Assembly: GCA_026770705.1 (NCBI GenBank)
Contig: JANJGN010000646.1
Coordinates: 1 to 64,000, forward strand
Length of the DNA stretch: 64,000 nucleotides
Direction: 5' to 3'
Source: Isurus oxyrinchus
Taxonomy: Eukaryota
The position numbers and the translations under genes are program-made. Positions 8,305 through 63,825 of the stretch are shown here, piece by piece. The number at the start of each line of letters is the position of its first letter. The first letter of the stretch is position 1. The notes under the pieces were generated by a model. It did no database searches, had not been told where the DNA came from, and worked only from the letters and a program-made list of their open reading frames with translations.

Positions 8305-8553
8305 TCAGTTTTTCTGGAACCTGATCTGTGTGTATTCCGTGTCCTCGCTCCTGTGCACAGTCCTGTCACCGCTGGGCAGCTTTGAAAAGTTGATGTTGGC
8401 GTAGAAAAGCTCGTCTGGTTTGTCGGGGTTCCCATGTCCAACATCGCCTCCCACTGCATCTTCAGAGAGACCCCGGGGAGCTGGGGTCTCCCCCTCGCTA
8501 GTTGCGTCTCTCTTTGTGTTCTGGGGCTCAGTAATCAGCACGTTCTGTTCATC
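8305..8553 (-). CDS. Siglec-like terminal cytoplasmic exon, module 1 (distal): ITIM LFYANI + ITSM-like TEYTQI
   Basis: TTTCTCTGTAG acceptor, phase 0; DEQNVLITEPQ...DELFYANINFSKL...EDTEYTQIRFQKN*. Same motif layout as CD33-related Siglec tails. Confidence 0.85.
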   Translation of the reverse strand, partial: DEQNVLITEPQNTKRDATSEGETPAPRGLSEDAVGGDVGHGNPDKPDELFYANINFSKLPSGDRTVHRSEDTEYTQIRFQKN

Positions 8554-9017
8554 CTACAGAGAAATGGAAACAGAAGACATCCTCACATCAATTACTGTTA
8601 CTGATAGGGTTAAATTATTGTGCAGACTCATTTAATTCTCTCTCTCCTATCGGATAAAAGAAACCACCAATGGCAGTGCAGCACTCCCTCAGTACTGACC
8701 CTCCAACAGTGCAGCACTCCCTCAGTCCTGACCCTCTGACAATACAGCGCTCCCTCAGTACTGACCCAACGACAGTGCAGCACTCCCTCAGTACTGACCC
8801 TCTGTCAGTGCAGCACTCCCTCAGTACTGACCCTCCAACAGTGCAGCACTCCCTCAGTACTGACCCTCTGTCAGTCTCGCACTCAATCGGTAATGGCTCT
8901 GGTGAGTGACGGCTTGGATGCTGCACACAGGTGCCTGGTGTGAGGCTCAATAACATGAACCTTGTAATCAGAGAGAGGATTAGAGAGAGAGATAGAGATG
9001 AAAGAACAGAGACAGAG

Positions 9018-9951
9018 TGTTATGAATCTATTAATGTATGTAATGTAATTGCAAACTGTCTTTTTAAACAGAGGTTTAGTCTGTGTGTGTGCCTGTGTGT
9101 ATTTTAATTGGATTAAAGCCAGCCAGTCTGTGTGCTTTGATGTATAGTAGTTTTGAGATGTAAACAAAGAGGTAAAGTGGTAATTTGCATTTGTAAATAA
9201 AACATTAAATGCCTGAAAGTGAAATCTTAAACCAATCAACGTTTATATTACTAATAAAATTGATACGATGAACGGGGATTTATTATTGGAAGAGATGGAG
9301 TTCAAAGGTCCTGATGATACATTGCGAATTTACCTTCAAACAGAAGCCATAAGACCATAAGACATAGGAGGAGAAATTAGACCATTCGGTCCATCGAGTC
9401 TGCTCCACCATTCATACATGGCTGATATGTTTCACAAACCCAATTCTCCAACCTTCTCTCCTAACCTTTGATCCCCTGACCAATCAAGAGCGTATCAATC
9501 TCCGTCTTCTTTACACTCAAGAGCTGGGTATAACTTGAGCAGTTTTGTGTGTGCAGAGCAGACGCTTGTAACATCAAAGCAGCTGTAAGCCTACACCTGT
9601 TTGCAAAGGAACCAAAGTGAAAGAAACCTCATTTGGAATTTGTGAGGTGAAAATGCTTTGCCGGGGTGTCTGCTTAAAGACAATGGGTTGTCTTAGAGGA
9701 GATTAGTTTGAGAATTTGTTAAAAATTTATGATAATACTAGTTTGTAGCCATGTGCATATGTTTAACTTGTGTAAATTAATAAATATCTCAAGTAGTTTG
9801 ATATAAAACCATCTCAAGAACTGGTGGTCTTATTCCTGAATTTAGAGCTGCATCTCAAACATTCCACTGGGAAATATAGGTTATGACAGTTGTTTAAAGT
9901 TTCCCTCTGGGATTTTAAACAACAGCCTTTACCAGTTTCTGTGTCATAACA
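9018..9951 (+). mobile_element. LTR-like element inside the 3-kb unit (other copies 12063-12996, 15072-16005, 18121-18874)
   Basis: TGTTATGA...TCATAACA termini. Copies 1-3 carry a ~175-bp CR1 3'-tail insertion (~9348-9520) that copy 4 lacks. Confidence 0.6.
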
Positions 9952-10085
9952 GAGAGACTGCATGATACTGAACCATTGCTGACTCCACAGGTACAAATCA
10001 GTGGGTAACTGGGCTGGGAATCTAGACACGTGTTGTCTACACACTGAGATTGAAGCTTTGGAGTGAGTGTAAACAGCTCCTGTAC

Positions 10086-10167
10086 CTGGTGCTTCACAGA
10101 GAGTGGACTGGGGGTCAATGCAATGTCACTGGTCCCTGAAACTCTCTCCTCCATCGCTGTCTTTCTC
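10086..10167 (-). CDS. Membrane-proximal cytoplasmic exon, module 1 (RKTAMEERVSGTSDIALTPSPLSVKHQ)
   Basis: TTGCAG|G...CAG|GTACAG; 82 nt, phase 2->0, compatible with the TM exon donor and the terminal exon acceptor. Confidence 0.75.
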
Positions 10168-62170: not shown

Positions 62171-62269
62171 CAGGGGATCATTTATTCTGAGATACAGTTC
62201 AGAGGAAAACCACCCATTAATATATCCCGTGTCAGTCACACCGTAGCAATAGAGAATTCAGATGGAATA

Positions 62270-62980
62270 GGGGCCTTTACCCCAAGGAAGTGGGAATACA
62301 AAGAGGCTCGGAGAGATGCGTCAGGTTATAAATCTCTGCTCAGAGCCCACCTGCAGTTAGTGGCTTCAGTTGTGGGTCCCGCCCCTCAGGGAGGGTATAT
62401 TGCCCTCCGAGGGGCTGCAGCCCAGAGTCACCAGAACGATCCCGGGGCTGAAAGGGTTAAATTCTGAGGACAGGTTGCACAGACCAGGCTTGTGTTCCCT
62501 CGAGTCTTGAAGATTAAGGGGTGATCTAATCGAGGGGTTTAAGATGATTAAAGGATTTGATGGGGTCGATAGAGAGAAACTATTTCCCCTGGTGGTGGGG
62601 GTGAGGTGAGGGGGTGGGGGTGAGGGTGGGGGTGGGGGTGGGGGTGGGGGTGGGGGTGAGGGTGGGGGTGGGGGGTGGGGGTGGGGGTGAGGTGAGGGGT
62701 GGTCCAGAACAAGGGGGCAGAATCTTAAGATTGGAGCCAGGCCGTTCAGGGGGTGATGTCAGGAAGCAATTCTTCACACAAAGCGGGGGTGGAAATCTGG
62801 AACTCTCTCCCCCAGAAAAAGCTGTCGAGGCTGGGAGGGGTCAATTGTAAATTTCAAAACTGACATTGGGAGATTTCTGTTGGGTCGGGGGGTGTTTAAG
62901 GTTTAAGGAACCGAGCTTGGTGGATGGGGTTAATATACAGACCAGCCGTGATCTGATTGAATGGGGGAACAGGCTGATTA
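62270..62980 (+). mobile_element. CR1-like 3' fragment with (GGGGGT)n expansion at ~62590-62700
   Basis: Reverse-complement homologue of 4533-4985. Confidence 0.8.
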
Positions 62981-63567
62981 TTGAATGACTGGGAATGTCA
63001 GCCCAGTGTATGGATCGCCAATCTCTAGAATGGGAGGATTCCTCTTCTATTGGAATTCATTCAGTAATGTGGGCATCACTGGCAGGGCCAGTGTTTATTG
63101 CCCATCCCTAGTTGCCCCTTGAGAAGGCGGTGGTGAGCCGCCCGCTCGAATACAACTGAGTGGCATGCCCGGCCCATTCAGAGGGGCAGTTAAGATTCCC
63201 CCACATCGCTGTGGGTCAGGAGTCACATGTAGGCCAGACCGGGTAAGGATGGCAGAATTCCCTCCCTAAAGGAGATTACTGGCCCAGATGGGTTTTTACA
63301 ACAATCTGGTAGTTTCATGGTGACCATCACTGAGAATTGTGAACAAACTGTGGAGAAATGTCGACTTGCCAGCCAATCAGCACGCCCTCTTCCCCCACAT
63401 CAGAAATGGCTGTTCCCTTTGAGATTGGGTTTTCTCGTGACTCTGTCCTGACGAGGATTGAAACCTTCGACAGCATGTTTTCAGCAACACCCAAGGGGAG
63501 ATTTGGTTCACCTCGGAGTTTGGACAAGATGTGGAATTGTTTAAAAGTCAGGATTGAAATTACTCAC

Positions 63568-63825
63568 ATTCAGTGGGAATTCTAATGGGCAGAGACTGGG
63601 AACTGCCCAGGATACTTGTTGCTTCACAGTAGTAGGAGATTTCCTCATCGAATCCATAAGGAACTGTAATAGTTTGACCAGCGAGCGCCAGATTCATCAC
63701 CTTTCCTTGGGAGATCTTAAACCAGGTGAAATTGTGGACTGCTGGATTCCCGTCACTGGAACAACTTAGAGAAATCACCTTTCCTTTTTCCAGTATCATC
63801 CTGACAGACGTGTTGTGAGGAGAAT
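63568..63825 (-). CDS. Gene E Ig C2 exon, CD22/sialoadhesin-like
   Basis: SPHNTSV...ISLSCSSDGNPAVHNFTWFK...YYCEATSILGSSQS; 258 nt, phase 1-1, joins 58981 in frame. The gene continues beyond the window. Confidence 0.8.

Follow-up and report, generated by a model that had tools for sequence, protein, structure and literature searches.

A tandem Siglec-type receptor cluster in Isurus oxyrinchus: an apparently intact gene with tyrosine-bearing tails, a partial gene and probably decaying copies with a membrane arginine

The closest described counterparts of the genes reported here are the human pairs Siglec-5/Siglec-14 and Siglec-11/Siglec-16, in each of which a V plus C2 ectodomain is common to a form whose tail carries an immunoreceptor tyrosine-based inhibitory motif (ITIM) or an ITIM-like motif and a form with a basic residue in its transmembrane (TM) span and a short tail. 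In a teleost-centred account, fish genomes are without CD33-related ITIM-bearing Siglecs and regularly hold only Siglec-1, CD22, MAG and Siglec-15 (PMC7226832); in the whale shark genome paper Siglecs figure only as one entry among the families with immunoglobulin domains in an analysis of ancestral-genome enrichment. The stretch dealt with here, 64,000 nts of the Isurus oxyrinchus assembly (contig JANJGN010000646.1, positions 1 to 64,000; hereafter the window), carries five tandem units of a Siglec-type family, lettered A to E in plus-strand order and transcribed in the order E, D, C, B, A. A first-pass annotation of this DNA had reported five same-strand paralogues with three different signalling ends and had read them as a paired inhibitory/activating receptor system. 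What it observed is confirmed in part, and its interpretation is supported in part: the window is probably a tandemly duplicated piece of an elasmobranch Siglec-type family in which gene A is intact, gene E is partial and copies B to D are decaying, the paired system being family-wide and its activating side being represented here by pseudogenes. The same annotation could not confirm from sequence that the system is undescribed. Our full-text literature searches found no paper describing paired Siglecs of sharks or other elasmobranchs; as predictions, however, these genes, including the forms with a TM arginine (Arg-TM), are already named by NCBI annotation (Siglec, CD33-like) in many elasmobranchs.

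The five units were delimited by self-comparison of the window with exon translations and blastn, and database searches were run exon by exon rather than with joined spliced models. Base composition is vertebrate-like (GC 46.5%, CpG observed/expected 0.27), the single run of Ns is at 20006-20465, and the window contains no flanking marker genes. All immunoglobulin (Ig)-type open frames lie on the minus strand, so that the five same-strand paralogues are indeed there. Four V exons are present (26975-26607 in A, 35384-35018 in B, 39869-39504 in C and 47367-46994 in D), together with three full C2-set exons (A, B, C) and one C2 fragment (C), and three full exons for a third Ig domain, Ig3 (one in A, two in E), and two 3′ halves of it (B, D); every Ig exon is phase 1-1. 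Outside one block of ~80 nts the V exons are 92-97% identical in pairwise comparison; within the block identity is 47-75%, and in the adjacent intron it is 95-99%. The earlier description of near-identical ectodomain exons thus holds for the V exons apart from this block. Gene E has no V or C2 exon within the window. The three signalling ends are as they had been described: an ordinary TM with tyrosine-bearing tails in A, an Arg-TM in B and D, and a neutral TM with YxN and SxYxxL motifs in E. What has to be given up is the assumption of five working receptors, as the assembled window holds an inhibitory-type gene, another gene in part and three copies that have decayed.

The ectodomain and TM of gene A are laid out as follows.

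27869-27908, minus strand: leader exon, ATG to donor, open (from an alignment of the leaders)
26607-26975, minus strand: V-set exon, 369 nts, open, with the YFFR arginine and three Siglec cysteines
25000-25296, minus strand: C2-set_2 exon, open
20474-20755, minus strand: third Ig exon (Ig_3/I-set), donor GT at 20473-20472
20006-20465, no strand: assembly gap within the Ig3-TM intron
19813-19909, minus strand: TM exon, phase 1 in and phase 2 out, acceptor AG at 19911-19910

From leader to TM every exon is open, the splice sites fit the consensus and the phases match, and the gene looks intact. The gap begins 8 nts into the intron past the Ig3 donor and ends 95 nts before the TM acceptor, with phase 1 at the exon border on either side. 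On the Ig3 side its flank is 94-96% identical to the Ig3 exons of gene E, and on the TM side 77% identical to the TM region of E, in the same order and orientation. As far as its flanks show, the gap appears intronic and compatible with the frame, with continuity across it unproven; it may hide more than its nominal 460 nts, for instance a second Ig3 exon, because gene E has two Ig3 exons, with an intron of ~1.1 kb, at the equivalent position. The C2-Ig3 intron of gene A is filled by an insertion of a long interspersed nuclear element (LINE). The TM span has glutamate (..LLAEIFIF..) at a position occupied by glycine in the orthologues, those of Cetorhinus and Carcharodon among them; this could be either a damaging change in an otherwise intact gene or a functional charged residue.

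That the ectodomain is of Siglec type, as had been claimed, is borne out by several lines of comparison. In Pfam the first Ig exon of A matches V-set (8.7e-12) and Ig_CD22 (1.3e-9), the second C2-set_2 and the third Ig_3/I-set. Searched with phmmer against PDB sequences, the V domain finds MAG, Siglec-5, Siglec-7, CD33, sialoadhesin, Siglec-8 and Siglec-10 at 1e-9 to 3e-13, the best single-domain match being MAG; a partial match to JAML and then Siglec-15 are weaker, and CD22 is weaker still. Identity to mammalian Siglec V domains is ~25-30%. The YFFRIE of the shark domain aligns with YYFRGD of MAG and YFFRVE of Siglec-5, that is, with the sialic-acid-binding arginine of strand F. In an alignment of 30 relatives this arginine (R102 of the V domain) is kept in at least 90%, and C21, C26 and C84, a C-x4-C in strand B plus a cysteine in strand E, are invariant or nearly so. 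An AlphaFold model built from the same alignment has a mean pLDDT (predicted local distance difference test) of 92, and in a Foldseek comparison of it with the PDB ranks 1-45 are all Siglecs, with template-modelling scores of 0.81-0.89; non-Siglecs begin at rank 46. By sequence, arginine, cysteine pattern and predicted fold, then, the V domain is a Siglec V-set, and it would be expected to bind sialic acid. The architecture of the family is a V-set domain, C2-set domains, a single-pass TM and either a signalling tail or a charged TM.

The block of low identity in the V exons (26800-26885, 35210-35295, 39700-39780 and 47190-47280, minus strand) corresponds roughly to the C to C′ strands. In mammalian Siglecs the C-C′ loop sets glycan specificity. 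The pattern in the shark exons suggests diversifying selection or patchwise exchange.

A HMMER scan with the V domain of A returned 990 proteins at E ≤ 0.001. Among the named top-ranked matches, the first 22 are without exception shark, ray or skate models of NCBI or UniProt, under the names Siglec-8/10/11/12/13/14, CD33-like and MAG-like; shark CD22-like and MAG-like proteins, teleost Siglec-like proteins and turtle Siglecs come lower. Identity of the V domain is 80% to a Carcharodon CD33-like protein (XP_041037177, P0153) and 78% to a Cetorhinus model. In a tree of V domains the family groups as one clade from sharks, rays and skates, supported at 95/97, in agreement with the lineage-specific system that had been proposed, and this clade holds members with ITIM tails, with tails of the E type, with Arg-TMs and with tails resembling an ITAM, the tyrosine-based activation motif of immunoreceptors. 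One of the latter, the Pristis pectinata 'MAG-like' protein P0009, ends in YQEL-x7-YSEL, an ITAM-like spacing, and some forms in the family may thus carry an activating motif of their own. The tree was anchored with shark MAG-like, shark CD22-like and turtle sequences labelled by their best PDB match and contains no mammalian sequences; it places the elasmobranch clade apart from the turtle CD33-like Siglecs, with weak deep support. Homologue searches with the Carcharodon orthologue return elasmobranchs only, and those with the turtle relative turtles only. The labelling itself gave MAG for the shark MAG-like protein (177 bits), CD22 for the shark CD22-like protein (111 bits) and Siglec-8 and CD33 for the turtle Siglec. 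Because separate shark MAG-like and CD22-like genes match MAG and CD22 in this way, the elasmobranch family is, on these comparisons, not the orthologue of shark MAG or CD22. The Carcharodon orthologue of gene A, P0153, scores 96 bits with CD33, 87 with Siglec-5, 85 with MAG and 36 with CD22; the resemblance appears greatest to the CD33-related Siglecs, by a small margin that need not mean orthology.

The signalling end of gene A is not a single tail. Behind its TM exon are four units of ~3045 bp (8290 to ~19704), 91-95% identical to one another, each with a cytoplasmic exon of 82 nts, the same in every unit, and a terminal exon of 249 nts, and each with consensus splice sites.

17395-19091, minus strand: tail cassette 4, cytoplasmic exon 19091-19010, terminal exon 17643-17395, FLYANP and TEYAQI, no ITIM
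14392-16222, minus strand: tail cassette 3, cytoplasmic exon 16222-16141, terminal exon 14640-14392, FLYANP and TEYAQI
11350-13213, minus strand: tail cassette 2, cytoplasmic exon 13213-13132, terminal exon 11598-11350, FLYANP and TEYAQI
8305-10167, minus strand: tail cassette 1, cytoplasmic exon 10167-10086, terminal exon 8553-8305, LFYANI as ITIM and TEYTQI as immunoreceptor tyrosine-based switch motif (ITSM)

The ITIM/ITSM tail that the first-pass annotation had given to gene A is therefore found in cassette 1, the one farthest from the TM exon; it is the only cassette of the four with a consensus ITIM. In cassettes 2-4 FLYANP is a YxN motif and not an ITIM, and the ITSM TEYAQI is present. 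The TM, cytoplasmic and terminal exons each have a matching exon in Cetorhinus and Carcharodon models, and the tails agree with these residue for residue; both the YANP and the ITIM form of the tail are conserved, since YANP tails occur in several Carcharodon and Cetorhinus models. Cassettes 2-4 had been considered as lacking a 3′ end of their own. This was rejected, as a poly(A)-like hexamer stands ~560 nts past the stop codon of each (AGTAAA in the two nearest the TM exon, AATAAA in the next); downstream of cassette 1 the sequence is different, with AATAAA at ~1.07 kb. It is conceivable, though on balance doubtful, that the cassettes serve as alternative 3′ ends, with splice or poly(A) choice yielding either an ITIM plus ITSM tail (cassette 1) or an ITIM-less YxN plus ITSM tail (cassettes 2-4), and this, if true, would place paired-receptor logic within one gene. 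The terminal exon of cassette 4 (17395-17643) is a mosaic, its 5′ coding part resembling cassette 1 (NTKRDAT.., LSEDAVGG) and its 3′ part cassettes 2 and 3 (FLYANP..), a sign of unequal crossing-over or conversion within the array.

The counterpart with a charged membrane span is encoded by one short exon, present twice.

31579-31718, minus strand: copy B Arg-TM terminal exon with stop codon, 140 nts
44515-44654, minus strand: copy D Arg-TM terminal exon, nucleotide-identical to that of B

The arginine stands in ...LILGIRAVIF..., in the outer third of the hydrophobic span, and the tail runs ~12-15 residues past the span without a tyrosine before the stop codon within the exon, just as had been claimed for B and D. 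Six gene models, from Carcharodon, Scyliorhinus canicula, S. torazame and Chiloscyllium punctatum, have the same exon as their C-terminus, all with the arginine unchanged; the TM span is identical to that of Carcharodon P0184 (270 aa), and the whole exon is 91% identical to it over 46 aa. Contigs of four sequencing runs were placed on 31400-36400: a DNA run (X1) and three small RNA-like runs (X6, X17, X18; two organisms). The joint 31718|33863, from the end of C2 to the start of the Arg-TM exon and with minus-strand GT..AG at the predicted borders, is found in all three RNA-like runs and is absent from the DNA run, whose coverage is ~1x; the joint of leader to V (35384|36246) is found in X6 and X18. 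The Arg-TM exon is thus spliced straight to the C2 exon, like the 219-273-aa models of other sharks. The check proposed earlier, whether this exon is ever joined to Ig exons, has accordingly been answered in the affirmative, for a locus that is not assignable. As to the paired logic that had been read into the cluster, it stands at the level of the family, with Arg-TM models in four species and the C2-Arg-TM joint; in the window both Arg-TM copies lie behind a broken V exon.

The Arg-TM exons of B and D are part of a ~400-nt stretch that is 99-100% identical, in a surrounding duplication of ~91%. Perfect identity was considered as proof of selection and rejected, as the island of identity reaches ~250 nts into the intron and there is another island outside coding sequence. 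Gene conversion would explain the island as well as selection would.

The other exons of B, C and D carry a variety of lesions.

36246-36285, minus strand: copy B leader exon, open
35018-35384, minus strand: copy B V exon, 367 nts, two 1-bp losses, stop at 35082-35080
33863-34159, minus strand: copy B C2 exon, open, its phase-1 end fitting the Arg-TM exon
33389-33538, minus strand: copy B 3′ half of an Ig3 exon, no acceptor
40966-40997, minus strand: copy C leader, 8-bp deletion, donor GT changed to CT
39504-39869, minus strand: copy C V exon, in-frame TGG to TGA at 39741-39739
37833-38963, minus strand: copy C C2 fragment 38963-38842 (acceptor lost) and full C2 exon 38129-37833
48071-48109, minus strand: copy D leader, 1-bp deletion
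46994-47367, minus strand: copy D V exon, 374 nts, frameshifted (5-nt net gain), first Siglec cysteine changed to Tyr
46319-46468, minus strand: copy D 3′ half of an Ig3 exon, breakpoint shared with B

Only the V exon of A among the four is open. In B the stop replaces the very arginine of YFFR (the frame reads YL-stop), and neither Arg-TM copy keeps an open frame through the ligand-binding domain, the V exons of B and D being frameshifted and the leader of D broken. No TM or tail exon of copy C was found in the window, and self-search of the window revealed no C2 exon of copy D. The lesions comprise a substitution, deletions of 1 bp and 8 bp, a net gain of 5 nts, loss of one donor and one acceptor, and exon truncations, and because they are so many and varied they argue for B, C and D being real pseudogenes rather than consensus errors. 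Intact Arg-TM forms are present in other species; the activating side in the window would, as assembled, consist of pseudogenes only.

Several observations weigh against parts of this account. All the lesions are taken from one assembly. Coverage in the DNA run is ~1x, with contigs biased towards multi-copy sequence, so that this run neither confirms nor refutes the indels, and the only DNA contig at 35058 does show the base missing from the window, though it probably derives from a paralogue. The RNA joints are not assignable to locus B: B and D have one and the same TM exon, and at 33980 every run reads T against A in the window. Because all Ig exons are phase 1-1, skipping the dead V exon keeps the frame, and B could still make an Arg-TM protein without a V domain. 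Finally, the ectodomain of gene A is joined to its TM and tails across the gap. If all five units are working genes, the frameshifts and stops of B, C and D being assembly or consensus errors and B and D the activating partners of A, then the intact Arg-TM exons, 100% identical over ~400 nts against ~91% around them, find a ready explanation, as do the C2-Arg-TM spliced form in the RNA-like runs and the extra base in the sole contig at 35058. However, errors of the indel type do not account for at least seven separate lesions that include TGG to TGA, the 8-bp deletion, the donor change of GT to CT, Cys to Tyr and the shared truncations; copy C is without a TM exon; the island of identity continues into the intron and fits gene conversion as well; and at 35080 most of the depth agrees with the window, 28 of 940 showing an insertion. 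We hold that explanation to be unlikely.

No greater probability attaches to an artefact in gene A, either a scaffolding chimera of different genes (20474-27908 joined to 8305-19909) or a fourfold cassette array created in assembly. It is indeed precisely between the two halves that a gap of estimated length lies, in a highly repetitive region, and the four cytoplasmic exons are identical; against a chimera, the order, strand and phase of the flanks match the Ig3-TM region of gene E and of orthologous models, and against an artefactual array, units that are 91-95% identical, with distinct coding differences and a mosaic fourth cassette, are not what collapse or expansion makes. Slightly less probable again is a family that is Siglec-like in fold only, with other ligands and no binding of sialic acid, the names in the databases then being labels of similarity. 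The low identity of the V domain to mammalian Siglecs, the failure of the V tree to join the clade to the turtle CD33-like Siglecs and the hypervariability of the C-C′ region between copies would all suit it; the arginine, its flanking aromatic motif and the unusual cysteine pattern are nevertheless kept across the clade, and every top structural match is a Siglec. A partly decayed, tandemly duplicated piece of a paired Siglec-type family therefore remains the reading that we prefer.

By analogy with known Siglecs the V domain of that family would bind sialylated glycans through its arginine, and gene A would most likely be an inhibitory or modulatory sensor of sialic acid that recruits SH2 phosphatases or adaptors: the tyrosines of ITIM and ITSM, as in known receptors, may recruit SHP-1/2 or SAP-type proteins, and YxN may recruit adaptors of the Grb2 type. 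The membrane arginine would pair with the aspartate in an adaptor that bears an ITAM (FcR-gamma or DAP12, for example), and its place in the outer third of the span resembles that in FcR-gamma-coupled receptors. The family as a whole would then constitute a paired inhibitory/activating system. Macaque Arg-TM KIRs pair with FCER1G, not DAP12 (PMC8102735). According to a survey from 2014, the common gamma chain arose in bony fish (PMC4016189), and given that placement the question of the adaptor in sharks is worth settling.

The remaining unit, gene E, is represented by its downstream half.

63568-63825, minus strand: Ig exon of CD22-like repeat type, good splice sites; possibly of E or of another gene
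57939-58981, minus strand: two Ig3 exons of gene E, 58981-58700 and 58220-57939
56576-56672, minus strand: neutral TM exon of gene E
52761-55819, minus strand: cytoplasmic exon of gene E 55819-55735 and terminal exon 52877-52761 (LYANC, SVYGNL)

The visible half of E appears intact, and its TM and tail match Carcharodon and Chiloscyllium models. A neutral TM with YxN and SxYxxL motifs had been announced for it, and TM 56672-56576 and the tail LYANC...SVYGNL are just that; the terminal SVYGNL fits the ITIM consensus. The two Ig3 exons are a recent internal duplication that included their flanks, 96% identical and with splice sites intact in both. A LINE insertion lies between the Ig exon at 63.8 kb and the Ig3 exons.

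Copies of the cytoplasmic exon of E, ~97% identical to it and with acceptor and donor intact, stand ~450-550 nts upstream of the leaders of A to D (28361-28450, 36742-36816, 42091-42180 and 48563-48652). Part of an E-type tail seems to have travelled with the duplication unit, and the copies could now serve, e.g., as a 5′ untranslated exon. In the leaders of A to D there is also an upstream ATG (MKYLGVDND...; 27869-27935 in A) that is out of frame with the ATG of the signal peptide. The MKYLGVDND-type reading opens the Carcharodon isoform X2 (P0017), and in Scyliorhinus canicula (P0001) both ATGs are in frame; the upstream ATG may thus mark an overlapping upstream open reading frame specific to lamniform sharks.

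The window is rich in repeats. A 12-bp satellite occupies 4.5 kb at its start (11-4534), a 33-bp minisatellite recurs at seven places between receptor units (8674-8875, 11719-11918, 17789-17974, 28679-30165, 37119-37621, 42421-43089 and 59113-59905), arrays of 43 bp stand at 49453-51431, and 2 kb of a 24-bp minisatellite (52976-54989) lie in the last intron of gene E. These arrays produce long spurious open reading frames. LINE-type reverse-transcriptase fragments are at 6716-7198 and 60007-62239 on the minus strand and at 24051-24452 and 21778-24769 on the plus strand, with RVT_1 confirmed for two of the open reading frames.

It is clear that short V-C2 receptors of Siglec type with ITIM/ITSM tails form a large family in elasmobranchs, one that duplicates fast and has an Arg-TM counterpart, and the inhibitory/activating design of primate Siglecs is therefore found in cartilaginous fish also, as an old feature or by convergence. 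The window shows the birth-and-death side of this family, with dead activating copies that retain a pristine TM exon, a hypervariable ligand-loop block and a fourfold array of tails. Other loci would suit functional tests better, the activating members here being broken.

In relation to the known systems, the cluster resembles Siglec-5/Siglec-14 not only in its two kinds of receptor end but also in being a tandem array with gene conversion and pseudogenes. It differs in that the shark genes form an independent elasmobranch clade, that their V exons diverge strongly in the C-C′ block instead of being near-identical throughout, that one terminal exon, joined immediately to C2, encodes the Arg-TM and that the activating copies in the window are broken. 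With CD33 and the CD33-related Siglecs the family shares the order of V, C2, TM and tail, and CD33 and Siglec-5 are the best PDB matches of P0153, the closest full-length orthologue of gene A. In cassette 1 a membrane-proximal ITIM of the LxYAxxNF type is followed ~20 residues on by a distal TEYxxI motif, an arrangement that would be shared with mammalian CD33-related tails. MAG, however, is almost as good a match for P0153 (85 versus 96 bits), and three of the four cassettes of gene A have lost the ITIM (YANP). The V-set fold and its arginine are common to MAG (Siglec-4), CD22 (Siglec-2) and the shark family, which is distinct from the separate shark MAG-like and CD22-like genes. The same exons and tails are found in NCBI models (Carcharodon P0153 and P0184, Cetorhinus Siglec-12 P0003 and the Siglec-12/13/14 of Scyliorhinus and Chiloscyllium), which are predicted proteins. 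The likeness to KIR, LILR and macaque KIR3DS is one of design: the membrane span holds an arginine, the tail is short and the tandem cluster includes an inhibitory partner; ectodomains and ligands are unrelated.

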